Below, one piece after another: positions 7,327 through 47,004 of a stretch of 64,000 bases of DNA (positions are counted from its first letter, which is position 1; every line of letters starts with the position of its first letter). A model generated the notes under the pieces. That model had not been told where the DNA came from. It saw only the letters and a list, made by a program, of their open reading frames with translations, and made no database searches. The stretch spans positions 13,581,934 through 13,645,933 of the forward strand of contig OZ316899.1 in the NCBI GenBank assembly GCA_973895155.1, given 5' to 3'. This DNA comes from Marsupella aquatica (Eukaryota > Plantae > Marchantiophyta). The position numbers were made by a program, and so were the translations under genes.

Positions 7327-9925
7327 TTGGCAAACCGCAAATCCAAGTTGAAAAAACAAGAGCAGATAGCAAGTGGTCAGCAAGGAGGTGGTCACCAACC
7401 ATCTCTCTCTGATGAAATGATTCTTGAAGCACAAAAGCAATGCGATCTCATGATGGAGAGTGCAAAGCAACAATGCCAAGATTTAGTAATTGATGGCAAC
7501 CAAAGGCAAAGAGAGATATTGGCTCCTGGGCAATCAGGGGCAATCAGAATTAGTAATGAGGCTCATGAAGCTGCCACTGTGATCTTGCATACAGCCCAAG
7601 AAGAAAGTGAAATTCTTATGGAGACTGCACATTCATGCCTTGCCAAGATTTTAGAGTCTAGGCAGGGGTCCCTAAGTGCAAGCTTCTAGAACAGGATGCC
7701 CACATTCAAATGGTAGAACAAAGCACCCAAACTACTTGCAGACAAGTGCAGGCAGCCCACATTAGTCCACTTAATGAAGGTGAGCAAGGTCACAACTCTG
7801 GCTGTGATCGTCAAGTGCAGCAAGCTGCCATGCTTGAGAAGAGAAGGACGGATGCAGGCAGGAAGATAATTGAATATGAAAGGAAGAAGCGCCTTGCTGC
7901 TGATGATTGTGAAATTCTCAATCAAAAGCGTAGGTGTATCACAACTGTCTTCTCAGACATAGTTAGGTACATTTTGGAGAAGACTGCTACATTCAATCTA
8001 GGTGCAAGGAGGGCAGTACTATCTAGGGTCACGACTAGTTCACCTAAAGTAGACGGGGCTGTAGCTACTGCATTGATTGATGTGAGAAAAACCTTGAGCA
8101 TAGTGAAGCCAGGGAAGCGCAAAGACCACCTTGCTGCAAAGTACCAAGTTCTGTCAGCACTTGTAGGAAAGACATGTGTAGATAAAAGGCAGCAGACCGC
8201 TCTAGCGAAAGCTTTGGGTATACAACGGCAAAATCTTCATAGTGCATCTAAGATGAGGATTCAGATTGATGCAGACAGTACAAAAATGTCTCCTATGGGG
8301 GAAAGAAAGGTACGTCGAGACAAGATTTCTGATGAAGTTCAAATCCAGGTGGCACACTTTTGGGAAACTCACACTAGGATTTCTCCATGTAAGAATAATC
8401 AAACCAGATTGCGACTAGGATGGAAAATGGTTCAAACACATCAAGTGCACTGGCTAGAGGATACACAAGTGAGAAACTCTATGTGATTGATGCAATTGTT
8501 ATGTCCATTTTGCCAGATTTGATTTAACTCTTATCTCCAGTCCTTGATGAGTAATTTTCCTTGTTAGTCAGCCATTGTGATCGCTACAAGTACCCATTGT
8601 GTTGTAAAGGTAAGATTTGAATAAATTTTGTGGACTGATGTCCTGTATATAGTCCTTTAGGAAGAAGTTTGGTCCTTGACAAAGAGGTAATTTTTTTCAG
8701 GAGGGACTATGTACAGGACTAGGGACTTTAGTCCTTTGTCAAAGTCTTTCCTTATGGTCCTTTGACAAAGGACTAAAGACTGTTAGTAGTCCATAGTCAA
8801 GAACTATTAACAGTCCTTGATGAAGGACTATGATCAGGACTGTAGTCCTTCCCCAAGGACCTTAATAGTCCTTTCCAAAGGACTGTATAAAAGGACTAGG
8901 ACTATAGTCCTTTCAAAAAGGACTATAGTCCTTACTCAAGGACTTTACTCCTTTTCCAAGGACTCTACTCCTTTTCCAAGGACTCTACTCTTTTTCCAAG
9001 GACTAGAGTTTTTTCTCAAGGACTTTACTCCTTTTCCAAGGACTCTACTCCTTTTCCGAGGACTGTAGTCCTTTCTCAAGGACTTTACTCCTTTTCCAAG
9101 GACTCTACTCCTTTTACAAGGACTATAGTCCTTTTCCGAGGACTCCTATTTCAAGTTTTTTAAGTCAAGTGCATTGAGTACTTGAGTCCTTCCAGATTGA
9201 TTCTACTCCTTCCCTAAGAACTTTAGTCCTTCACCTCTCCTGGTAGAGTCTTCCCAATAAGAGCTCGAACCCTTACTGAAGGACTGTAGTTGCAGGCAGA
9301 ACTGAAAGTCCTTCAGTAAGTAGTAGTACCCACATACATGGGTTTTTGTGGCTGCACATTTGAGGGTATCCGTTCCTAACAGTCTTTCTAACAAAAATAA
9401 TGTATGTCTTGTATATGTGCAGTTTCGATTTTTTCAGCATTTTGTGACTGGTGCACAAGGGAGCAGAATGGGGTGTCTATAGGGATGCAGCCATTTATAT
9501 ACTTCAAGCCATATTATGTCCGTAAGATGAAAGACATAAATGTTTGTTGTTGCAAACAACATGTGGAGATGGACTTACTCAAAGAGGCAATTAACAAATT
9601 CAGGCGGCACCAGCACAACAAGGACTGTCCTTGTGAATGTGATACCTGTAGACCCTTGGGTGTTGTACCCATCTCTTCTTGTATGGCATCTACAAAGTTC
9701 ATAACCTCAGTTTGTGGTTGGATAGAGGAAGCTCTTTTTCATAGAGTGCCTGAGACAGAGTGGCACCAAAAAGCCTGTATTATGGGTGAATGTGAAGAAT
9801 GTGGAGTAGAGAAGTTGGATTGGTGCACTCAAGAGTTGGACCTTGCATAGAATCAAATGATCAAATGACAGACATTTGAATATCGTGACCTGGATGACAC
9901 TGCCCAACAGAAGAGAGAAAAAAAA
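7327..9925 (+). pseudogene. Cys-rich DNA-transposase-like gene, N-terminal half (tentatively Sola2-like), intron-containing and truncated by an insertion
   Basis: ORFs 7710..8486 and 9404..9850 with FKPYYV...CCCKQH, CPCECDTC and CIMGECEEC; candidate GT near 8469 and AG near 9436; no catalytic DDE region seen. Confidence 0.45.
8642..9280. repeat. AGGACT/AGTCCT-rich array including ~21-bp tandem units (about 8930-9145)
   Basis: Repeated CCTTTTCCAAGGACTCTACT-like units; the motif occurs in both orientations. Confidence 0.9.
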
Positions 9926-25275: not shown

Positions 25276-27093
25276 TCACCGACATTGAGGACAAAACCAT
25301 GATCCACTAGGAATCATGTGCAAGGGTGGTGTCAAACACGACATGTGCCATCCTCTAGAACACCTATCACAAATCAACATAGTAGCTGCTTCCTGAGCAG
25401 ACCCACACAACATACACTTCAAGCTAGCACGAACATGTGCCAAGCTTGGATCCACAGTGCCATCAATGTTTGGAAGGTGACATGGTGCACAATTACGCAC
25501 GTGATCCTTCCAAACCATACCATCACGCCCTTCCAACATAAGGACTCCAGAAGGCAACACTTCACGCACACGCAAGATTGTCCGCCCTGCGGTCACATCA
25601 AGCGTTGTTGGTGCTGTCTGCTGCAAATAAACATAATCGCCAGGATGAAATCTCCTAATCTTCGTGCGATAACCTCCTCCACGAATAGTAGCATATCGCA
25701 AAGTATCACGATGCTGGGCAATAGCAAGGTTGTCAAAGGCCATGGGCATGACTCTCTCAAAAACTCGTGCCCTCTCTGAACAAACCTTTACCCAAATATC
25801 TGGATCATCCAAATCCACAATAGTTGCAACATCACGATGAATAGCCGCTGGCAAATCTGGCTCTCTACCATAGAGCAAGAAATAGGGGGAGAAGGATGCA
25901 AGTGATGCTTGTCGACTGAAACGGTAGCCCATAGCTAACCAAGGTAGTTGGAGATCCCAGTCTCCCAAATGACCAACCTGTAAGCCATACTTGCGCAATC
26001 CTCTCTTCATAGTTTGTACAACTCTCTCTGCCAATCCATCTGCCTCAGGATGATCGCGAGAAGTAGTACGATGGTCAATCAGAGCTTGCTCACACAAACC
26101 CTCAAAATCTCCACGGAATTCCATGCCCTGATCAGTCAACACCTCAGCTGGTGCTCCAAAGTGACTGAGTACTCGATCCAGAAATGTGGTAGCCACTCCT
26201 CCACTAGCTTTATCTGGCAATGCCACTAGTTCAATCCACTTGGAGAAGTGCTCCACCATAACCAAAACATAACGGTTATGTCGTTGGGTGAGAGGCAATG
26301 GACCAGCAAAGTCCAAACTCCATCTGTACCCCAAACCCATGATTGGCAATGGATGCAACTGGGGAGTGGGAGCATTAAATGATGCCCTCACTCGATCACA
26401 TACCACACACTTAGCTATCAATTGCTGGACATGAGTGTGCATACCACGCCACCAATACTGTGTCTGCAGCAAGCTATAAGTGCGCTTGACACCAAAGTGC
26501 CCTAACTCCTCGTGCGCATGTCGCACCAAATGTACTCGTTGTGATGGTTTTGGTACCACCAATACCTTACCATCACCTAGTACTCTCAAAAGATGGCTTC
26601 CTTCCCATCGAAACCTCTTGGCTCTCTGTAGAACCCTGTCACGTTCCTTGGCATCAATACTGCCAACAATAGAACCACTGCGCAGATATTCCAACACTTT
26701 CACATCATTGTGAATATCTTGCTGTCCAAAGGTTACCTCACCAACATCCACATCTGAAGACTCATCATCTGCTTCATCCAATGAAGTAGAGTCCACAGAA
26801 CCACTGCATGCTGGAACCCAACAAAGGAAGGCAGATGCATGCCATCCTGGCACCATCTCCTTATCTGACTCATCATGCCATCTGGCTCCAGTCTCATCCT
26901 CCTGACTGGTACATGGATTGCAGCTCAACCCATCTGCATCCAAATTCATCTTTCCAGGCCTATGCACCACCTGGAAATCATAATCCTGTAACAACAATGC
27001 CCATCGTGCAAGCTTCCCTGTAAGCTTGTCAGACTCCATTAACCACTTGAGAGGCTGATGATTAGTGATCAAAGTGAAAGGATTACCAAACAA
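25276..27093 (-). CDS. RNase H end, integrase (HHCC and DDE) and C-terminal PHD finger
   Basis: HEELGHFG...CVVC; SLDFAG...TDQG...AERVVQ; C4HC3 motif CMLC...CDRC...HMSC...WFCPQC. Confidence 0.92.
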   Translation of the reverse strand: MFGNPFTLITNHQPLKWLMESDKLTGKLARWALLLQDYDFQVVHRPGKMNLDADGLSCNPCTSQEDETGARWHDESDKEMVPGWHASAFLCWVPACSGSVDSTSLDEADDESSDVDVGEVTFGQQDIHNDVKVLEYLRSGSIVGSIDAKERDRVLQRAKRFRWEGSHLLRVLGDGKVLVVPKPSQRVHLVRHAHEELGHFGVKRTYSLLQTQYWWRGMHTHVQQLIAKCVVCDRVRASFNAPTPQLHPLPIMGLGYRWSLDFAGPLPLTQRHNRYVLVMVEHFSKWIELVALPDKASGGVATTFLDRVLSHFGAPAEVLTDQGMEFRGDFEGLCEQALIDHRTTSRDHPEADGLAERVVQTMKRGLRKYGLQVGHLGDWDLQLPWLAMGYRFSRQASLASFSPYFLLYGREPDLPAAIHRDVATIVDLDDPDIWVKVCSERARVFERVMPMAFDNLAIAQHRDTLRYATIRGGGYRTKIRRFHPGDYVYLQQTAPTTLDVTAGRTILRVREVLPSGVLMLEGRDGMVWKDHVRNCAPCHLPNIDGTVDPSLAHVRASLKCMLCGSAQEAATMLICDRCSRGWHMSCLTPPLHMIPSGSWFCPQCR

Positions 27094-28401
27094 TTAACAG
27101 CGGAAGTGTGCCACAGCCCACACTGCTGCCAAACACTCTCCCTCATAAGAGCTATACTTAGCCTCTGCTAAATTGTTTGATCTACTGGCATATGCCACAA
27201 CAAACTCATGTCCTTCATCATCTTTCTGAGTCAGCACTGCTCCAAGTCCTACTCCACTCCAATCAGTGTGTAGCTGAAATGGTCTCCCTGAAATGGGTCT
27301 TCTCAAAATAGGGGATGATGCCAATCTTTCTTTCAACTCCTGAAAGGCATGCTCCTGATCATCACCCCAAATCCATTCCTGATCCAACTTAGTGAGTATG
27401 GTCAAAGGTTTAGCAAGCTGGCTAAATCCTTTAACATACCTCCTATAGTAGCTCGCCAATCCCAAGAATGCACGAACTCTACTCACATCAGTAGGACGAG
27501 GAATCTGTGTAATGGCCTCCACTTTAGTCTGTTGTACACCCAATCCCCCTGGGTATATAGTGTGGCCCAAATACTCAATCTGTTCTTGGAAGAACTTACA
27601 CTTGCCGGGATGGAGCTTCAATCCATGTTCCCTCAATCTCTCAAACACAATCTGCAAGTGTCGTTGATGTTCTTCCACAGTAGAAGAATAAACCAAAATA
27701 TCATCAATATAACATCTGACAAAATCCAGACCTGCAAGGATTCGATCCATGACTCTCTGGAACTCAGCTGGTGCATTCTTCAACCCAAATGGTAAGAACA
27801 ACCACTGATACAAACGATCCTTGCCATAAGAATCAATTCCCCAGAATGCTGTCTTGGACCTGTCAGAATGTCTGATTGGAAGCTGATGGTACCCTGCCCT
27901 CAGATCCAATGAACTAAAAACCTTTGCATGCCCCACTGCATCAAAGATCTCCTCAGGTGTGGGCATGGCATATCGATCAGATTTTGTCTGACGATTAATA
28001 GGTCGGTAATCACCACACATACGTCTATCCGTGTAATTACCATGCACATCCTTCTTGGCTGGCATCACTGTGGCAGATGCATACTCCCCGTATGAGATCT
28101 CCACCAAACCAGCCTCCAACAAATCCTGAGTTCTGCTCTGAATCAGAGCTCTTTCCATGTCACTATAATGATATGGTCTATGAAAGATTGGCGCATCACT
28201 AGCCAATTCAATCTGAATACCAGGGCCCTTCAATGTCCCCAAATCCTTCATGCTGAATGCAAAACAATTCCAGTAACTCTTCAAGAATCGATGCATGCGA
28301 CGTCTCTCCTCCCCAGTCAACTTAGGACCAATCTGTGGCTCCCAACTCTCCACCAGATCCCTAATATCTTTTTGTAGGGTAGAAGAGATAGCCGATGATT
28401 G
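27094..28401 (-). CDS. Reverse transcriptase and RNase H (Gypsy)
   Basis: RMCGDYR, LDLRAGYHQ, LPFGLKNAP, YIDD, TDWS, YASRS; same frame as neighbours; TAA at 27094 sits where Tyr is expected. Confidence 0.95.
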   Translation of the reverse strand, partial: QSSAISSTLQKDIRDLVESWEPQIGPKLTGEERRRMHRFLKSYWNCFAFSMKDLGTLKGPGIQIELASDAPIFHRPYHYSDMERALIQSRTQDLLEAGLVEISYGEYASATVMPAKKDVHGNYTDRRMCGDYRPINRQTKSDRYAMPTPEEIFDAVGHAKVFSSLDLRAGYHQLPIRHSDRSKTAFWGIDSYGKDRLYQWLFLPFGLKNAPAEFQRVMDRILAGLDFVRCYIDDILVYSSTVEEHQRHLQIVFERLREHGLKLHPGKCKFFQEQIEYLGHTIYPGGLGVQQTKVEAITQIPRPTDVSRVRAFLGLASYYRRYVKGFSQLAKPLTILTKLDQEWIWGDDQEHAFQELKERLASSPILRRPISGRPFQLHTDWSGVGLGAVLTQKDDEGHEFVVAYASRSNNLAEAKYSSYEGECLAAVWAVAHFRC

Positions 28402-29540
28402 CTATTTAGCAGTAGATTGAACAGTCCCTTCTTGCTCAACAATCTGTCCAGCCTTGGCCAATCTTGCCATAGGTCCATGGACTGCCTGCTCGCCCCCAGC
28501 TGTGGTCATCACTGTCTCAGTGGACCGCAAGCTCACTAATGGACGATCAGTAACACCAGCAGAGCGCATCCGCAACTGTTCAGCTACTCCCAAGCTGATA
28601 ATCCAAGTCAAGCAATTCAAATCCATGGCTTGACCAAGGACTTGGCGGCGAGAACTCTCTGACACTGAGGCAACTGCAGTAGTGCCTGTCAAAAATCCCA
28701 TAGCACGCTCTCTTTCATCAGCAGTAGGCTCCACTAATTGCTGTAGCGTTGTATCCCATACAAGTCCAGGCCCACCTGCTCTAAATGCATATGAAGCAGA
28801 ATGGCTCACAAAAGTGGGTAATGCACAACGCGGACGACCAACTACATTGACCACTGCCAATGGAGATCTGTCAGACTGGGTCACATGTTGTGCACAACGC
28901 CCTGGATCCAAAATATCATCCACCACCAAGGATGCTGAGCGAGGAATGCTATCAAATGCTCGCTTCAACACTTCACAAGGTAACAAATTAGTCCACCACA
29001 AGCGTGGACGATGTGCACGAGAACCCACACGTGCAGCATCCAATAATACAGCAGGTCCAATCCAAGATCTGACCTGATGTACACTAGCAACAAGTCGATG
29101 ACGCTCATCACCCAATAGTGGCACATTCTCCAAAATGTAGGCAGGGGAATGTGTTTGGTGTAACTGGAGATGACGCAATACCCGTAACATCTCCCAAAAC
29201 AATGCAGAGCGTGGATCATGAAGTCCATGTCCAACTCCAGCTCTTGATTGGCCTTGACATGGCCAACCAGCAATCACCAAATCAATGGGGCCAACGCGAT
29301 CCAAATGATCCGCCCCCAGCAATGAAATATTAGCCGGCAATGCATGCTGATAGCCACGAACAGCATCCACTGGCAACAACTGTGGATAACGGTCTACCAA
29401 CATAGCCACATGACGCAATGAGACTCTCCGTGTTGTCTCATCTGTCTCCACATACAAGTATCAACGCACAGGAATTCCTGCCTGAAGAATAGCAGCCAAT
29501 CCAGTGCTAATTCCACCAAATAGATCGAGCAAACAAATAC
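28402..29540 (-). CDS. C5 cytosine DNA methyltransferase domain, DNMT3-like
   Basis: Motif I LLDLFGGISTG; IV GWPCQGQSRAG; VI ENV; VIII AHRPRLWWTN; IX ERERAMGF; X LGQAM; one nonsense TGA at 29461. Confidence 0.92.
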
Positions 29541-30615
29541 CCTCTGGTGGATACTGCCATGCAATAGGAGTGGTATCCAATGGTGAAAGAGTCACTGGTC
29601 CACCTGTAGGAGATTGCTCTGCTCCTGACTGTGGTGTAAAAGCATGACGCCATGCATCATGTACCAATTGTGCTGCCCTCTGCGGCAAGGCTTGTGCAGT
29701 ACCCCATACTGGTGGCACAACACTAGTTGGATTGGGATCATCCCAATCCAGGTTGCTCCTTCGCACCATTTGCTCCTCATGTGACTCCTCCACTGATGGA
29801 ACATCTGCTGCATGTGCATTACCCTCCATCAAATCATCAGGACCAGTGATCACACCACTGAAGGGTGCCAAAGACAATAGTGTGGGTTTAGGGCCTCCCA
29901 TAGGTCCACTAAATCGCACTGGCAACCTGCTCAATCGAGCATCTCCTGACTGCCAATCAGGTCTGTATGATACTGATTCATCCCAAAAATCAAGAATAAA
30001 TCCCATGGGGTACAACACTGTACATCCCACCAACACGTCATAGGACTCGGCCTTAGTCAAAATAGCTCGCGCCTGTATGTGGGAGCTATCCTTGGTATGA
30101 CCCTCCTGAATCCTCAATTCAAGTGGTCGTCTGGTGATGTGCTGTGTGGGTGTAGGTCCCCCCAATGAAGTCTGAATAGGAAAGGGACACTCGTCCAGAT
30201 CATCTGGACGCAATGCCAATCCTCGTACCGCAGACTTACCCAACATCAAGGGCTGAGCACCAGTATCCAGTAACACTCTCTCTGGCTGGTATATGGCTCC
30301 AGTAGGCCCAACTAATCGAAAGATACCGCTCCGATTATCCAATGACACCACGCTAGGTTTAAACCTAGTCCTCTCAAATGCAGGGCGTGCTGGCAAATCC
30401 ATCAACTTTGCCGCTGTTGCATGCCATGTCTCGCTAGTAGTCGTAGGTGGCATGGTCTTCACAACTTCAACACTGCAAGCTGCTTTTGCATGGGAAGCAA
30501 CAACTGGAGTGTCCTCACAGAGTGTAGCTGCCAATCTGAACACTTCTGCAGGACCAACTCCCAAGTTCAGCATGTCTGTAGCTGAAAATAATGGGGTGCG
30601 CACTATGGTTGTAGC
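29541..30615 (-). CDS. Aspartic protease region and linker
   Basis: VLLDTGAQ catalytic motif; YDVLVG. Confidence 0.85.
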
Positions 30616-32236
30616 CGCCCCCCCCCAGCAAGGTACCTGTCATCCCTGCTGCATCACTACCTGATTCTGCCAACTTACCCACGCTAGGGTTTGTCCGAAT
30701 CGGGTTCATAGAGGCAGTCTGAACTGTCTCTGACAATGTAAAAGACTGAGGAAGCTTTGTCTGACGACGTGCATCCCCCCTCTGTGGATCTAGGTCCACT
30801 ACTGCTCCTCGGGGCTCAAGAGCTTTTGCTGCCCCACGCGTCAAAGCTGTTGATGCATCAATGTGTGCAGTGCCACACATGAATCCCATGGTGGCAAGAT
30901 CTCCATCAACCCCATAAGATGTGGAAGCTCCATAGGATGTAGAAGCCCCATCACCAGAAGTAGGTCTCACCTGAGAACTAGCCATAGCAGCTAGTTGTTG
31001 CTCCAATTGAGCAATCTTAGCATCCTTAGGATCTGTGGTCATAGCAGGAGCAACATCACCTCCCTGCCTTGCTACATGTGGCATACCTCTGCCACGACCA
31101 CCACCTCTACCTCCTCTTCCCTGATCATGTGTGTGTTGTCCTCCTCTCCGTAACTCGGGATGGAGTGAGAAACACCTATCCTTGGTGTGTCCAGGAGCTC
31201 CACAATGATCACACTGCCGCTGATCAGGTGCTGAGGCCCCTCCTGACCCTCTAGGATCAGGGCAATACCGCTGCGCATGATCCCCACCACAGGTCCAACA
31301 TCCTGATTGCTGTCCAGCATAGGAAGGCACAGGTCTCTGACTGGTAGACTCTCGTGCAATAGGCTTCTCCCTCTGGCTCTTCCGTGCAACAGGCTGTGGT
31401 GTGGATGTAGATGCAGCCTTGGGTGCTTCCTTGGCAAATCCGGAAGTCACCACCTTCTCATTCACCATATTGAGCTCAATTCGCTCAGAAAGTGTAAAAA
31501 CGACTGCCAATGTGGGATCTGCATCCCTAAGCAGAGTGACATCTCTCACTCTACGTCGCAATTCTCTATCCAGAATTGCATACCAAAACTGGACTGCTTG
31601 AGCCTCTGTCACTCCCTTGGTGACAGTGATCAATCTGCGCATACGAGTGTATGCCTCACGTAGACTCTCTCCAGTCTTGCGCTGAAACTCCTGGAGACCC
31701 TTCAACTTATCAGTCCTCACACCCTGATAGTTCTGCTTCAATACCTCAAAAAACTCTACCACAGGGTTAAATGTTGGCGCAGCTCCAATCCCTGTCACAA
31801 TCACACCGGTAGGAGTAGCGATGGATGTTGATGGAGTGGTACTGGTAGATGGTGTGCCACTCTGGCTAGTGCTACTAGAAGAAGCAACGGCTGTAGCAAT
31901 GGGTTGGGCAGTCGCTCTAGTGCCATAGGTGATGGACACATAATTAGGCGACCAATGCTGCCTCCATGCCTCAATCTCAACCAAATGAGCCTTTCGAAAC
32001 TCATGGTAATCATCCATGGGTGGCCCCTCCAAATGCTGAAATAATCCCTTCCATGCCATGAAAGGGGTAAACAGCGTGGCATTACGCAATGACTGCATGT
32101 CGCACCACGTATCAAACTCCTGGATGAAGTCATCCAGATCAATCGTGCCAACTGCACCAGAGTATCGTCGTGGCCCTTTGTAGCCCCGTACATCTCTTCC
32201 ATATCCCACAACAAAGGTGCAATCACCCGATGACAA
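30616..32236 (-). CDS. Gag with two zinc knuckles
   Basis: QRKTGESLREAYTR; CWTCGGDHAQRYC; CDHCGAPGHTKDRC; true start codon uncertain. Confidence 0.88.
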
Positions 32237-35140: not shown

Positions 35141-38100
35141 CTAAATGATTCTTGGCAAGGCATCACATAGCTCCCCACTGAATTGTGAAGCGTCCTCACG
35201 AACATCTTCAAACTCATACATGTAGTATTTTTTAAGCCTATCATAATGTACTCTTATAGGATAAATCTTGCCCGTGATATTGGCTAATTGAACTGACCCA
35301 TTAGAGAACATCATTTCTACCTTGTAAGGTCCTAACCAACGAGTGTAAAGCTTCCCAGGGAACTTTAGATATCCATTGTCATAAAGTAACACAAGATCTC
35401 CAGTCTGAATACAGATTGGCCTTAACTTCTTATCGTATCGATGCTTCATCAGCTCCTGACGATACTTCAGTCTCTCTGATGCTATCAATCTGGCTTCCTC
35501 CAATGCTTCTAGTTGGTACAACCTTGCTTTCCTACTCTTGGCCTCATTTAGACGTTCTTGTATGGTAACAGAATAAGTGGGAACCTCCAATTTGATTGGC
35601 ACCAAAGCCTCTTGCCCAAATGTTAGGAAATAAGGTGTATGTCCCGTTGTTGTTTTGTAGGCTAAGTTGTAAGCAAAAATAGCAACGTATAGCTTGTCAT
35701 CCCAATCATCCTTGTGATCCGACACCGTCTTGTTTAGTATTTTACCAATGATTCCATTCACACGTTTGGTAAGTCCATTGGCCTTTGGATGGTAGGGAGT
35801 TGTAGGCCAATGCCGAACCAAGTATTGCTCATTAAGCCGCTCGACAACATTATTCAAAAAATGAGTCCCCCGGTCGCTGACCAGTTCTAGAGGCGCCCCA
35901 TACCGAGTGAAGATTTGCTTGTATAAAAACTGAGTTGTTGTAACTGCATCATCCTTCATGGTTGGCCTAGCTTCTACCCACTTAGTCGCATAATCCGTGG
36001 CCAAGATGATGTATTTATTTATCCAAGGATATAGTTTTGGCTTCAGAGGCCCAATGTAATCAATACCCCATTTTTCAAATGCGGCAAGGGGTAAAATTGG
36101 ATGCAATGGATGTCTGCTGGCAGCCCTTGGTCCCCCCGCCCTTTGGCAAGGATCACATTCCTTAATGAATTGATGGACATCCTTGTGCAAAGTCGGCCAC
36201 CAGTAACCGGCATCCAATATCTTTTGTGTGGTAACTACTGGTGCAAAATGGCCTCTGGCCTCCTCTCCGTGCATTGCTTCCATTACCTTTCGGGCATCAT
36301 CTCTCTCCAAACATCGTTGGAGACTACCATCCGCTCCCATCATGTGCAACACTCCTTTAATGGCCTGGTAACGTGTTGCCTTCCGCAAGAACACCGCCTT
36401 TTGTTCTCTGGTCCATGCCCTATTCAATCGTGTTGTACTCAAAAATCCTAATATCTCTAGGTACCAGGTATTCAAAGCCTCAACCTGAAATAACTCCTCA
36501 TCCAGAAATTGGTCGTCAATGCAATCCGATGCCGGATCACCGGGTACCCTAGAGAAGAAATCTGCATTCACGTGTAACTTCCCAGGTTTAATTATTGATT
36601 TGTAATTGAATTCGTGCAACAGAAGTATCCATCGAGCCACTTGTCCTGTAAGATCCGGCTTGTTCACTAGGTACGTCAAACTTTCATGATCTGTATGAAA
36701 GATCACATGGTAACCTAATAAATAATATCAAAACTTCTTAGAAGAGTAAATGACCCCCAACGCCTCCCTCTTAGTGGTCGAGTAGTTCTGCTTGGCTATG
36801 GCTAACTGTCTGCTTGCAAAATAGATGGCACCTTCCCCTTATCATCTAACTGACTTAGAACGGAACTGATTCAAAATCCTGATACATCCACAAATACATG
36901 GAAATCCTTGTTCCAATCAGGTGCCATCATGACGGGTGCTTCTACCAATTTTTGCTTCAACTACACCACGGCCGTAACTCGTTCAGGTGTTGATTCAAAA
37001 TCTGAACCCGTTTTGAGCATGTTGGTTAGCGAAAGCGCTAGTTTGGCAAAATCCTGGATAAACCTTCGATAGTAACCAATACAACCTAAGAAAGATCCGA
37101 CATCTTTTATATTCTTGGGTTGCATGATATCCAACCAAACTGCCAATTTTCCCTTGTCAATTTTGATACCCTTCTTGGACACCTTGTGACCAAGCAGGAC
37201 CCCCTCAGTTACTCCAAAAAAAAATTATCCGGATGTAGCTTTAGTCCCACTTGTCTGCATCTTTCAAAGGTTTTGCGTAAGTATTTGGCATATCTGGACG
37301 CCTTCCCAAGCACAGCAAAATCATCTATGAATATCTCCAGAAATTTCCTCAGGTAGTCATGAAATATGTTAACCATCAACCTTTGGAACATAGCTGGTGC
37401 ATTACATAATCCAAAAGGCATCCGGTTGAACACATAGATTCCCCACTCGGTAACAAAAGTAGTTTTGATCTGATCCTCTTGCCTAATTCTGATTTGATTA
37501 TATCCAGAGTAGCCATCCATGAAATAATACAACTCATGGCTAGCTACAGTGTCTAACACCATATCAATAAAAGGTAAAGGAAAATGAATGATCCTTTAAA
37601 GTGACATCGTTTAACTTCCTGTAATCCTGGCAAACCCTGATCTTCAGTTTGCCATCAGGCCCCGCCTTCTTGGTACAATGACAATAGGAGATACCCAATC
37701 CAAATGTAGAACTGGAGTAATGACGCCGGCCTCCACCAACTTATCGATTTCTACTTTTACCAACAATGAGTACTTTGGGTTCATCCTCCTCATTGGTTGC
37801 CAAAATGATTTGGCTCCCAACATAAGATCAATCCGATGCTCTCCCAACTTTGGGTCCACTCCTTGTAAATCAAGGTGACTCCAAGAAAAAACATCCTGGT
37901 ATTCCGTAAGTAATTCACTGATTTCCTTCTCAACTTTTGGAGCAAGGTCCCTACCTAGATTCACCTCCCGTCCTTCAGCCAACCTTAGCTTCCTGTACAT
38001 ATTGCTGTGATTGAATCATGTTGATTTGCTTTTTAAGGTTTGGATCTAAGTCAGCTTCCAACCTAGCCACCTCATTCCTCCATACACCAGAATTTCCGGC

Positions 38101-42816: not shown

Positions 42817-45800
42817 ATGGATTTCTCCACGGATAGTTGGATTCAGAGGTTTTTGGGAGATGTTGGCACCACAGAGTTGCCACGTTTCATTATGGAGTTT
42901 GAGCGGTGGTGTGATCAACAAAAGTTGCACAACACGGCATTCTCCCCTTTCATGGCATGGCGGGCATTGTTCCAGCACTTGGAGGGGCCACCCATGCATG
43001 ACTATGAGGAGTTTCAGATGATGTATGCTGAGCACATTGAGTCTTGGAGATGCAAGTGGTCTCCAGATTCCGTCTCACTCATAGGTGAAGACGTGTCCTC
43101 AAAGGAGGAAGAGGGTGCTAGCAGCTCTAGCACATCGTTGCCAATCCCCAGGTTCAACCCGATGGTGGAGTTCTTCAAGGTGTTGAAGAAGAATTATCAG
43201 GGTGTCTGCGTGGACAAGTTGTTGAGCCTCCAGACATTCAATAGGATGGAGGGTGAGAGTTTGCGCAAGGCGTACACGCGCATGAGGCGGTTGATCAGTA
43301 CCACAGAGGGCATTACTGATGCCCAGGCTATCGAGATTTGGTACAAGGCCCTGGATAAGGATTTGAGGAACCGGGTTTGGTTTTTGGCGTTGGCCATTGA
43401 TGAGAAACTGACACTGGAGAAAGTTTTCCTGCTTTCTGATACCATTGACATGAACCGGTCAGAGGAGAAGGTTGCCACCCTTGGATTTGGCAAGGAGTCC
43501 CTTGGAGGCAGTGCTGCTAGTCCATGTAGTGGGCAGCAGCCAAATTGATTGGGGAATGTGCCAGGGAGGGCACAGCCCAATGCTCCCGGTGGTGCTATTG
43601 CTAGTGGCAGGAGAGCAGCAGCACCCCAACGTCCCTTTCAGCCCTCTTATGCCACTTAGGTGGAGTGCTGGAGTTGTAAGGGACCTCATAACCAGCCTGA
43701 TTGCCCTGATAGGAAGGGTCCACCTCGTGCAAAGCCGGGCGGAGCTGCCCCTAGACAGCCCGATCTTAGGCATTGTGACCATTGTCACCAAGATGGGCAT
43801 ACTATTGATAGGTGTTTTGAGCTGCGTCTAGAGATGCGGTTTGGTGTTGCCCGTAGGGGAGTTTCTCCTAGAGGTCGTGGAGGCCCCACCCTGGTTGTGG
43901 AGGTGACAGGGTAGTCCCCGTAGCCAGTGCACAAACCACCAATCTTGCAGCAGCCACCAGTATCCAGGAGTTGGAGAAACAGTTGGCAGCAGCCAATTTG
44001 GCGTTGCGGGCCCCTAGCAGAGGAGAGGCCTCTAGTTCTTGCACCATGGACAGTTCCCAGATTGCTTTTGGATTCAGTGACTTGGATTACATGTGAAGTG
44101 TTGCACAATTAGATAGTGGTGCAGCTATCACCAGAGCAGTGGCTAGGGTTGCTGAGCCACGAGGTGCTGCCGTGGAGCTGGATCCACCATGAGGGAAGGC
44201 CAGCCGGCAACAGAGATTACCATAGAGTTTTACATTGATGGATACTGCACGGACTTCTACTATGGCACCCATTGCTGACAATTGTGGACCTTCTGTCCAC
44301 TCTCATGATCACATGGGGCCACCCAACATTGATTCTAACATGGTAATTAGCCCAGTGTTGGGGGCGGCTAGAGCCTTGTGTCAGGTTCCATTGTTTTTTT
44401 GTGCTCAATTATCTTCTCTTGGAGTTCCTGTTGCAGATGTGTTGCGCCAAGCAGCTACATTGTATGATACTGGAGCAGTTTTGGCATCTAGCTGTGACAC
44501 AGCTGGTCCACCGGTTGGCCCAGATGACACAAGGTCCAACCATTCTTTGCTGAGAGATGCTGGGACTTCTTGGCAGGCTTCTGCTGCTTGATTGAGTGAG
44601 CTCCCTGCCAGACCAGGCATTGATCTGAGTGTTGTGACTCCTGGTGTGGTTGTGGTGGACAATCGTGCTGGTGTTTTTACATTGGTTGGCCCTAGTGGCA
44701 CAGTGTATGTGCCACCCCATGTATTGTTGGATTCAGGTGTACAACCTCTCATGCTGGGGAAAGCAGCTGTCCAGGGCTTGGGCTTAAAGAATGCTGAGGT
44801 GGAGCCTTGCCCATTTCAGATTCATACATCTCTTGGCGTCCAAGAGAAGGCACAGCACATGATGCAAGACAACCTCATTGTGAGGTTAAATCCCCACCGC
44901 ACTGGAGATGACTCTACCTTGAAGGTGCGAGCCGTTGTCACACTTGTAGAGTCTTATGATGTTTTGGTAGGGGGAGCCGTACTCTACCCCATGGGCTTTG
45001 TGTTGGATTACTAGCAGGAGACTGTTCACTATCGACCAGGATGGCAGTCTGGAGATGGTAGGAAGTGTGAGCTACCAGTCCACTATTTCCTACGTCGGAC
45101 TGAGCCATCACCAGAGAATGGAGGGTAATGCCCATGCTACAGACATCCCCGTAGCAGAGCAGTTGCACGACTCCTAAGGTAATCACAGCATTCCCGTTGT
45201 CCCACAGGTATGGGGTTCCACTCCTGAGTTATAGCAACATGTTGATTCATATATATAGGCAGCATGGCGTGAACCATTTGCCCCTTTAGCGGAGCCACCT
45301 GTGGTGGATGGCATTCCCAGGTTGATCACTGTGTCCCCTTTAGACATCACTCCCATTTTGTGGACATACCCTACTGAGGGTATTCGCTTGTTGGAATTGT
45401 TTGGTGGCATGAGCACTGGTTACCTGCTGTCTTACATGCTGACATTAGAGTGCAGCAGTATCTCTATGTGGAGCGCAATGACACAGCCCGACGTGTCTCA
45501 CTACGTCATGTTGCTCAGTTGCATCAGCAGTTCCCTGATTTGTTGCCTCTATCAGCAGTAGCATGTCTCTCCTACCTACATTCTGGAGAATGTTCCCTTG
45601 TTGGGTGATACTCGGTCATAGATGGTGGCTAGTATGCACCAAGTGAGGTCCTAGTTAGGACCTGCTGTTTTTTTAGATGTTGCTAGTGTCGGATCGACAG
45701 CACATTGTCCACGATTATGGTGGACCAACTTGATGCCGCCTGAGGTTTTGCAGAGGGCATATCAGCACATTGTGCAGCCTGTTGGGCTCACTGTGGACCA

Positions 45801-46965
45801 CATTTTGGATGCTGGACGACATGCACAGCTGGTGCGTCACGATGATCGCTCCCCATTGGCAGTGGTGAACCGGGTTGGTCAGCCCCGTGCAACACTTCCC
45901 ACTTTGGTGAGTTTCCCCTCATCATATGCTTACCGTAATGGTGGACTGGGGTTAATTTGGGATTCCCAGCACAGAGAGTTGATGGAACCTATTGCTGATG
46001 AGCGTGAGCGTGCTATGGGATTTCAGACTTGCCCCACGGCAGTACCCTCAGTGACTGAAGTAGCACGCCGTCACATTCTGGGTCAGGCTATGGATCTTAA
46101 TTGTTTGACTTGGATTGTGAGCTTAGCCTTGGCAGAGCAGCGCCGATTACAATCTGTGACACCTCAACATGGATGCTCTTCCTCTATTGGGTCCTTAGAG
46201 ATCAGAACAAGGGGCGACAGTGCCAGAAATTGTCATCCCTGGACTTCATGGGGAGTCAGTGGAGAGGCCAGTGGGCTTTCTTTTTTGGAGCAACATGGTA
46301 TTGCTGCTCTTGAGGTTGCAGCATAGCAACCACAGTTGGTGTTCTCTGCAACTTCTGCCAAGGTTACCATTGACAGTTGGGAGCCAACTATTGGCCCCAA
46401 GATCACTGAAGGTGAGAAACAACGTGTACAACAGTTTCTACAGAGTTATGGAAGTTGTTTTGCTTTCAGCATGCAGGATTTGGGCATGTTAAAGGGACCA
46501 AGCATCCGGATAGATTTGGCAGTTGATGCACCCATCTTTCGGAGACCATATCGGTATTCCGATATGGAGAGGGCACTAATTCAGGCAAGATGCCAGGATT
46601 TGTTGGCAGCAGGACTTGTGGAGAAGTCATTTGGTGAGTATGCTTCTGCCATTGTGATTCCAGCAAAGAAGGATATGCATGGCAATTGGACTGACAGGAG
46701 GATGTGTGGAGACTATTGTCCAATTAATCGGCAGACTAAGTCTAACAGGTATGCCATGCCCACACCAGAGGAGATATTTGATGCCATTGGGCATGCGAGA
46801 GTGTTTAGCACATTGGATCTCAGGGCTGGATATCACCAGCTGCCTATTAGGATTGGTGACAGGCAGAAGACAACATTCTGGGGGATTGATGCTCATGGGA
46901 AGGATGTGTTGTATCAGTGGCTATTCTTACCGTTTGGATTGAAGAATGCGCCAGCTGAATTTCAG
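42817..46965 (+). mobile_element. Degenerate relative of the DNMT-Gypsy element (gag-PR-DNMT-partial RT)
   Basis: Collinear homology: WRALFQHLEGPP, LLDSGVQ, LLELFGGMSTG, ENV, ERERAMGF, LGQAMDLNCL, RMCGDY; many stops; truncated within RT. Confidence 0.9.
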
Positions 46966-47004
46966 AGTAATTTGAATTCCTCTGAGAGATGTCTGCCGAA
47001 CTCG

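Follow-up and report, generated by a model that had tools for sequence, protein, structure and literature searches.

This study asked whether an in-frame TAG codon that separates a DNA methyltransferase from the reverse transcriptase (RT) in a liverwort retrotransposon is damage or a programmed signal. The window, a stretch of 64,000 nt from Marsupella aquatica, contains two copies of a Gypsy-DNMT3 LTR retrotransposon, and both carry the codon. Our comparison with related elements indicates that the TAG is most probably a programmed, conserved stop of a bryophyte Gypsy-DNMT3 clade that is passed by type-I (TMV-like) readthrough, and not damage.

Copy 1 lies on the minus strand, where its pol frame runs from 30603 down to 25276 and encodes protease (PR), a C5 DNA methyltransferase (DNMT), RT, RNase H (RH), integrase (IN) and a PHD finger at the C-terminus. 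The Gypsy domain set of PR, RT, RNase H and IN was thus found together with a C5-DNMT inside the polyprotein (PF00145, RVT_1, RT_RNaseH, rve and Integrase_H2C2), the PR being identified from its alignment and the LLDTGAQ motif. Three stops break this frame (29461-29463, 28402-28404 and 27094-27096), the last of which, a TAA, was missing from the earlier note. The PR-containing part (29464-30603), whose translation holds LLDTGAQ and aligns with the PR of loci L083, L055 and L085, is followed, just past DNMT motif I, by the TGA at 29461-29463. This stop had been described as unshared, and it is indeed a decay stop private to copy 1, the codon being AAG in Calypogeia L083 and a Q codon in copy 2. 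The DNMT and the linker behind it (28405-29457; Pfam PF00145, E=4.6e-11) stay open until the TAG at the DNMT/RT boundary (28402-28404), which is followed by CAA TCA at 28396-28401. The linker after the stop, the RT and the start of RNase H continue in the DNMT frame (27097-28395; Pfam RVT_1, E=6.8e-35, and RT_RNaseH_2, E=5.1e-29) up to the TAA at 27094-27096 within RNase H, another private decay stop, where L083 has TAC. The remaining RNase H, the integrase and the C-terminal PHD finger occupy 25276-27093 (Pfam Integrase_H2C2, rve and PHD). The PHD finger (PF00628, E=1.1e-10; 25279-25420, minus strand) ends the integrase, as it does in Calypogeia L083, where a PHD gene call lies at 9403-9678; in chromoviruses this position is held by a chromodomain.

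Upstream of the pol frame, gag with its two CCHC knuckles (30515-32236, minus strand) is out of frame with PR. A second recoding site at this gag/PR junction (30515-30603) was considered and rejected because the direction of the shift is inconsistent, being +1 in copy 1 and -1 in L053. Gag and PR form a single frame in L083, L085 and L004, and the frame breaks of copy 1 and of L053 (at 1088-1112) look like private indels in these alignments.

Copy 2, on the plus strand, covers gag-PR-DNMT-RT up to RT residue 219 (42844-46977). It belongs to a different subfamily, carries several frameshifts and is truncated at its 3' end; its pieces share 45-77% identity with those of copy 1 by tblastn, with switching between frames 1 and 3. 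Its in-frame TAG at the DNMT/RT boundary lies at 46324-46326 and is followed by CAA CCA at 46327-46332. The motif strings given in the earlier note were recovered exactly, namely AAA TAG CAA TCA in copy 1 (TAG at 28404-28402) and GCA TAG CAA CCA in copy 2, and in both copies the TAG is in frame with the C-terminus of the DNMT upstream and the N-terminus of the RT downstream, the distance from the stop to SWEP being 18 codons in copy 1 and 16 in copy 2, as had been stated. The further claim that the linker around the stop is otherwise unalignable was also supported, as the two copies barely align there despite identities of 66% in the DNMT and 77% in the RT. Copy 1 was counted as dead because of its two extra stops, and copy 2 because it is frameshifted and truncated; both are dead fossils that inherited the stop signal. 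The window also contains a third, unrelated Gypsy-type RT/IN relic on the minus strand (35588-38006), with 27-29% identity to copy 1 and a 521-aa ORF at 35141-36706.

The site was compared across the family in the DNA of 80 metagenome loci and several assemblies, found by HMMER on 1.8 billion representative proteins and by a word-indexed search. About 40 database ORF fragments end at one and the same residue, 100 residues past the LGQAMDLN motif, and one database protein runs through the site, reading W, then QP and, further on, WEP. The homologous codon is a stop in 50 loci (39 TAG and 11 TAA). In the 280 codons flanking it, stops occur at a rate of about 1% per codon; the sharing of the stop lies far beyond chance. 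Three further stop-bearing loci (L084, L085 and L086) bring the total to 53. These 53 loci derive from metagenome contigs of the Sphagnum type, from Calypogeia fissa and Marchantia polymorpha, and from further assemblies, and they span some eight subfamilies and three or more named genera of bryophytes; many of the Sphagnum-type loci are copies of one family and do not count as independent observations, and for most metagenome loci the host is inferred. The large subfamily groups with annotated proteins of Sphagnum tenellum, S. troendelagicum and S. jensenii, L083 is part of a Calypogeia fissa chromosome, L084 comes from Marchantia polymorpha subsp. ruderalis, and the database proteins closest to the window element are from bryophytes. 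The sole sense variants at the site are TAY (L038) and TGG (P0219), each one step from TAG in an otherwise stop-bearing family. In addition, P0055/L002, whose contig ends with ATG TGA CAA CT, is a possible UGA variant of the site. Thousands of family contigs from four sequencing runs match positions 26900-29700 at 80% likeness, and the three stop positions are absent among the 40 of 634 differences listed.

Apparently intact relatives retain the stop as the only one in their frame. It is the sole in-frame stop in 5,324 nt of L055, in 5,207 nt of L086 and from 651 to 8,701 in L085, and in these three elements the open frame after it measures 722 to 1,039 codons. Pfam places PR and DNMT before the stop of L055, and RT, RNase H and IN after it. 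The earlier note had put the methyltransferase on the Gag side of the stop, and this arrangement was borne out: gag, PR and DNMT form one unbroken frame in L083 and L085, therefore the upstream product is Gag-PR-DNMT and the gag/PR break of copy 1 is private, while RT-RH-IN follow beyond the stop in frame 0 and under purifying selection. The downstream ORF is in frame 0 in all subfamilies, the step from the stop to the W anchor of the RT being 17, 18, 20, 24 or 25 codons, and in every subfamily, at any linker length, the spacer contains exactly one stop, the reading frame being open and preserved on either side of it. Public gene models (NCBI; Calypogeia L083, Marchantia L084 and Sphagnum) split the element into several 'genes', one of which ends at the stop; annotated bryophyte proteins thus conceal its two-ORF organisation.

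The RT beyond the stop evolves under strong constraint, with omega values of 0.03-0.08 between subfamilies at dS of 1.3-3, and the linker on both sides of the stop is near-neutral (omega 0.4-1.25). Synonymous sites are thus saturated at these distances, and the downstream ORF was translated throughout the divergence of the subfamilies. In the RT tree, rooted at the midpoint, all 13 rows with the stop fall into a single clade (96/96). Its sister is a stop-less clade that comprises three Closterium proteins, ENA contigs and L070-L082, and elements of the order RT-RH-DNMT-IN lie outside both. The simplest account is one gain (or one loss) of the stop followed by long retention. In the representative library, the order RT-RNaseH-DNMT-IN is that of most long Gypsy-like polyproteins with a DNMT (P0011, P0022, P0023, P0028, P0043 and about 40 others); these polyproteins come from ENA, JGI and Logan contigs, and their DNMT lies between RNase H and IN rather than between PR and RT.

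The hexamer behind the stop follows a recognisable pattern. CAA-TCA is found in copy 1, L001, L053, L061 and L085, and CAA-CCA in copy 2, L057, Calypogeia L083 and Marchantia L084; CAG-TTA occurs in L054 and L055, and CAA-TTA, the hexamer of TMV itself, in L062. The TMV-type context CAR-YYA claimed for the two window copies is therefore present in both, as well as in L001, L053-L055, L057, L061, L062, L083, L084 and L085, and it follows the stop in most subfamilies. The most abundant subfamily, the Sphagnum-type with CAA-CCC in about 38 loci, agrees at five of the six positions and deviates at the sixth base; L016 reads CAA-CCT. L086 does not fit, its stop being followed by GAA-TTC (TAG GAA TTC at L086:2087-2095). 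CAR-YYA is thus not found in every member, and a different stimulator may act in some; for L086, either this or a lower readthrough rate would apply. Among 11 subfamily representatives, the information content reaches 1.2-2 bits across nine bases (the stop plus CAR-YYN), a peak that coincides with the hexamer, and is mostly below 1 bit on either side. The amino acid of the second codon after the stop varies (P, S or L), yet its two pyrimidines are retained, which fits a constraint at the RNA level.

An RNA structure shared across the subfamilies was not found 3' of the stop by RNAalifold, and the conserved stimulatory structure that characterises MuLV-type sites was likewise absent. Single folds 3' of the stop gave z = -1.1 and -1.2 for the window copies. 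Single folds hinted at a long stem in which the pyrimidine-rich linker would pair with the purine-rich LTGEER codons; it was rejected as a general feature, as a swap of cognate and non-cognate duplexes with shuffles was unconvincing. A possible extended stem-loop is present in the subfamily L053-L062 only, where it starts 11 nt past the stop, with its closing side some 100 nt further downstream (L053:3164-3290, L054:2081-2210, L055:3155-3281, L061:806-935 and L062:873-999). It has 11 outer pairs, with several wobble changes besides a single compensatory change from GC to AU, and single folds gave z = -2.7 and -3.0. This stem resembles the extended 3' elements of other readthrough sites, which we take as a lead only.

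Based on these data, an active element would produce two proteins from one mRNA. Termination at the stop would give Gag-PR-DNMT as the major product, and a near-cognate tRNA that now and then decodes the stop, aided by the CAR-YYA hexanucleotide as a type-I/TMV-type signal, would give Gag-PR-DNMT-RT-RNaseH-IN-PHD as the minor one. The stop would accordingly set the ratio of structural protein, PR and methyltransferase to the replication enzymes. The ribosomal bypass, its efficiency and the fate of the DNMT are what we infer; among sequencing runs, a search turned up no RNA run with the sequence. The case of Tca2 illustrates that an in-frame stop between gag and pol is by itself no proof of context-driven readthrough (PMC2194720). 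Here, type-I readthrough is favoured because the frame continues, a single stop stands in an open linker, no conserved ATG lies downstream and the 3' hexamer is conserved.

Three other explanations were weighed against programmed readthrough. The TAGs of the window could be products of independent decay that coincide by chance, for example through C-to-T changes on CAG, in keeping with the degraded state of both copies, of which copy 1 has two other nonsense mutations and copy 2 several frameshifts. The earlier note had proposed an alignment of family copies as the check on this point, with CAG in intact copies as the sign of independent hits; neither CAG nor CAA was found at the stop codon of any family locus compared, the other stops of copy 1 are private, and the stop recurs in 53 loci, including apparently intact elements of several subfamilies and genera. 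By this family comparison, independent decay is already refuted, and the window TAGs are inherited. It is also very improbable that the stop is a true terminator of non-autonomous lineages that make Gag-PR-DNMT only and depend on stop-less relatives for their RT and IN. Such relatives do exist (L070-L082), some of them in the same metagenome collections, but they form a distant sister clade; moreover, the RT after the stop is under purifying selection between stop-bearing subfamilies (omega 0.03-0.08 at dS >1), and the 722 to 1,039 open codons in L055, L085 and L086 would not have been retained in an untranslated ORF.

A programmed, conserved stop might, on the other hand, be bypassed by a route other than readthrough, such as partial splicing as in Ogre elements, termination followed by reinitiation, or an internal transcript for RT-RH-IN. 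We regard this as improbable, though less so than a true terminator. In Ogre, GAG-PROT is divided from RT-RH-INT by an intron that is spliced in a subset of transcripts only (PMC6317226), and the near-neutral linker around our stop, the ATG that the Sphagnum-type subfamily carries two codons past the stop and the deviating hexamer of L086 could all be accommodated by such routes. However, the Ogre spacer is about 274 bp between separate ORFs, whereas the spacer studied here holds exactly one stop and remains open and in frame whatever its length. No ATG is conserved past the stop, and none is nearby in copy 1, copy 2, L001 or L055. Further, it is in the hexamer 3' of the stop that conservation is concentrated, as a readthrough signal would predict, and not in motifs resembling splice sites. 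Type-I readthrough of a programmed stop is thus the reading we prefer.

Retroelements need far more structural protein than polymerase, and the position of the switch between the two decides which activities are abundant. With the switch behind a captured DNMT, the methyltransferase would be made at Gag levels. That it is made at these levels, or packaged in many copies, would follow from how the ORFs are arranged only where readthrough is inefficient. A wider proposal, namely that the Gag/Pol switch of a whole land-plant clade is a leaky stop of TMV type behind a captured DNMT, which is made at about the level of Gag, travels in or with the particle and methylates new cDNA or host chromatin, is tentative and in our view rather doubtful as a whole. 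In this case, the DNMT would be produced in stoichiometry with Gag and perhaps 5- to 20-fold above RT/IN.

All experimentally verified cases of readthrough in plants were viral as of 2009 (PMC2754532). If the wider proposal is true, plants would have in this stop their first type-I readthrough signal of a cellular, non-viral kind that is open to experiment, and, since a stop-less sister clade exists, also a natural experiment. A signal kept across mosses and liverworts would be a compact case of cellular readthrough to test in model bryophytes. For annotation, it follows that the stop is not to be scored as damage and that gene models breaking or splicing around the site are wrong.

Gypsy elements with a DNMT in the polyprotein have been described in streptophytes. 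KnitGypsy-Dnmt3 of Klebsormidium nitens carries its DNMT within the Pol polyprotein ORF, and neither a stop nor readthrough is mentioned in its description (de Mendoza et al. 2018, PMC5890265); a 2026 preprint treats Gypsy-DNMT3 elements as a streptophyte group. The window element agrees with this group in being Gypsy-type with a DNMT in the polyprotein, its order being PR-DNMT-RT-RH-IN and its assignment to the Dnmt3 class being taken from PMC5890265. Unlike KnitGypsy-Dnmt3, its nearest relatives are bryophyte, and the stop-bearing clade is distinct from stop-less relatives including the Closterium proteins. The literature searched yielded no account of a conserved type-I stop that separates DNMT from RT.

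In other retroelements, the ratio of structural protein to polymerase is set at the end of gag. LTR retrotransposons have reportedly been surveyed for gag-pol recoding by Gao et al. in 2003. Among gammaretroviruses, UAG readthrough between gag and pol of MuLV requires a purine-rich spacer and a pseudoknot. MuLV resembles our element in having an in-frame UAG in a retroelement, where low-frequency readthrough yields a polymerase fusion; it differs in that its stop follows gag and not PR-DNMT, and in that no conserved 3' structure is seen here. The earlier note had set the position of the switch apart from that of most LTR elements. The switch does lie behind the DNMT and not at the end of gag; a position after PR is nevertheless not unique, as some plant LTR groups have GAG-PROT as one ORF and RT-RH-INT as a second (PMC6317226). 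Ogre, in particular, is a Ty3/gypsy element of plant hosts with the switch behind PR rather than gag. It differs from the window element in its spliced spacer, as opposed to a single stop in an open linker with a DNMT upstream; the non-coding spacer of a few hundred bp between separate ORFs that defines the Ogre type is not seen, the linker being open on both sides. Rice RIRE2 has been cited as a candidate readthrough element (PMC2754532), and the closest precedents are these two-ORF plant elements and the rice candidate.

The stop also resembles the TMV-type signal of tobamo-, beny- and pomoviruses. The type-I motif is defined as UAG-CARYYA (PMC5382211), and the TMV context in plant reporter assays gave 6-32% readthrough, with UAA and UGA decoded too and Tyr or Trp inserted (PMC2754532). 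In our elements, a UAG stands between two ORFs in frame 0, CAR-YYA follows it, and the arrangement is conserved in diverged relatives with purifying selection downstream. Unlike these viruses, the element is a DNA-integrated LTR retrotransposon, its main subfamily has CAA-CCC and one member GAA-UUC. The two systems share the in-frame UAG, the CAA or CAG followed by YYA, a polymerase downstream and a plant host. As in the P126/P183 pair of TMV, the upstream product includes a methyltransferase, and L062 even shares the TMV hexamer CAA-UUA.
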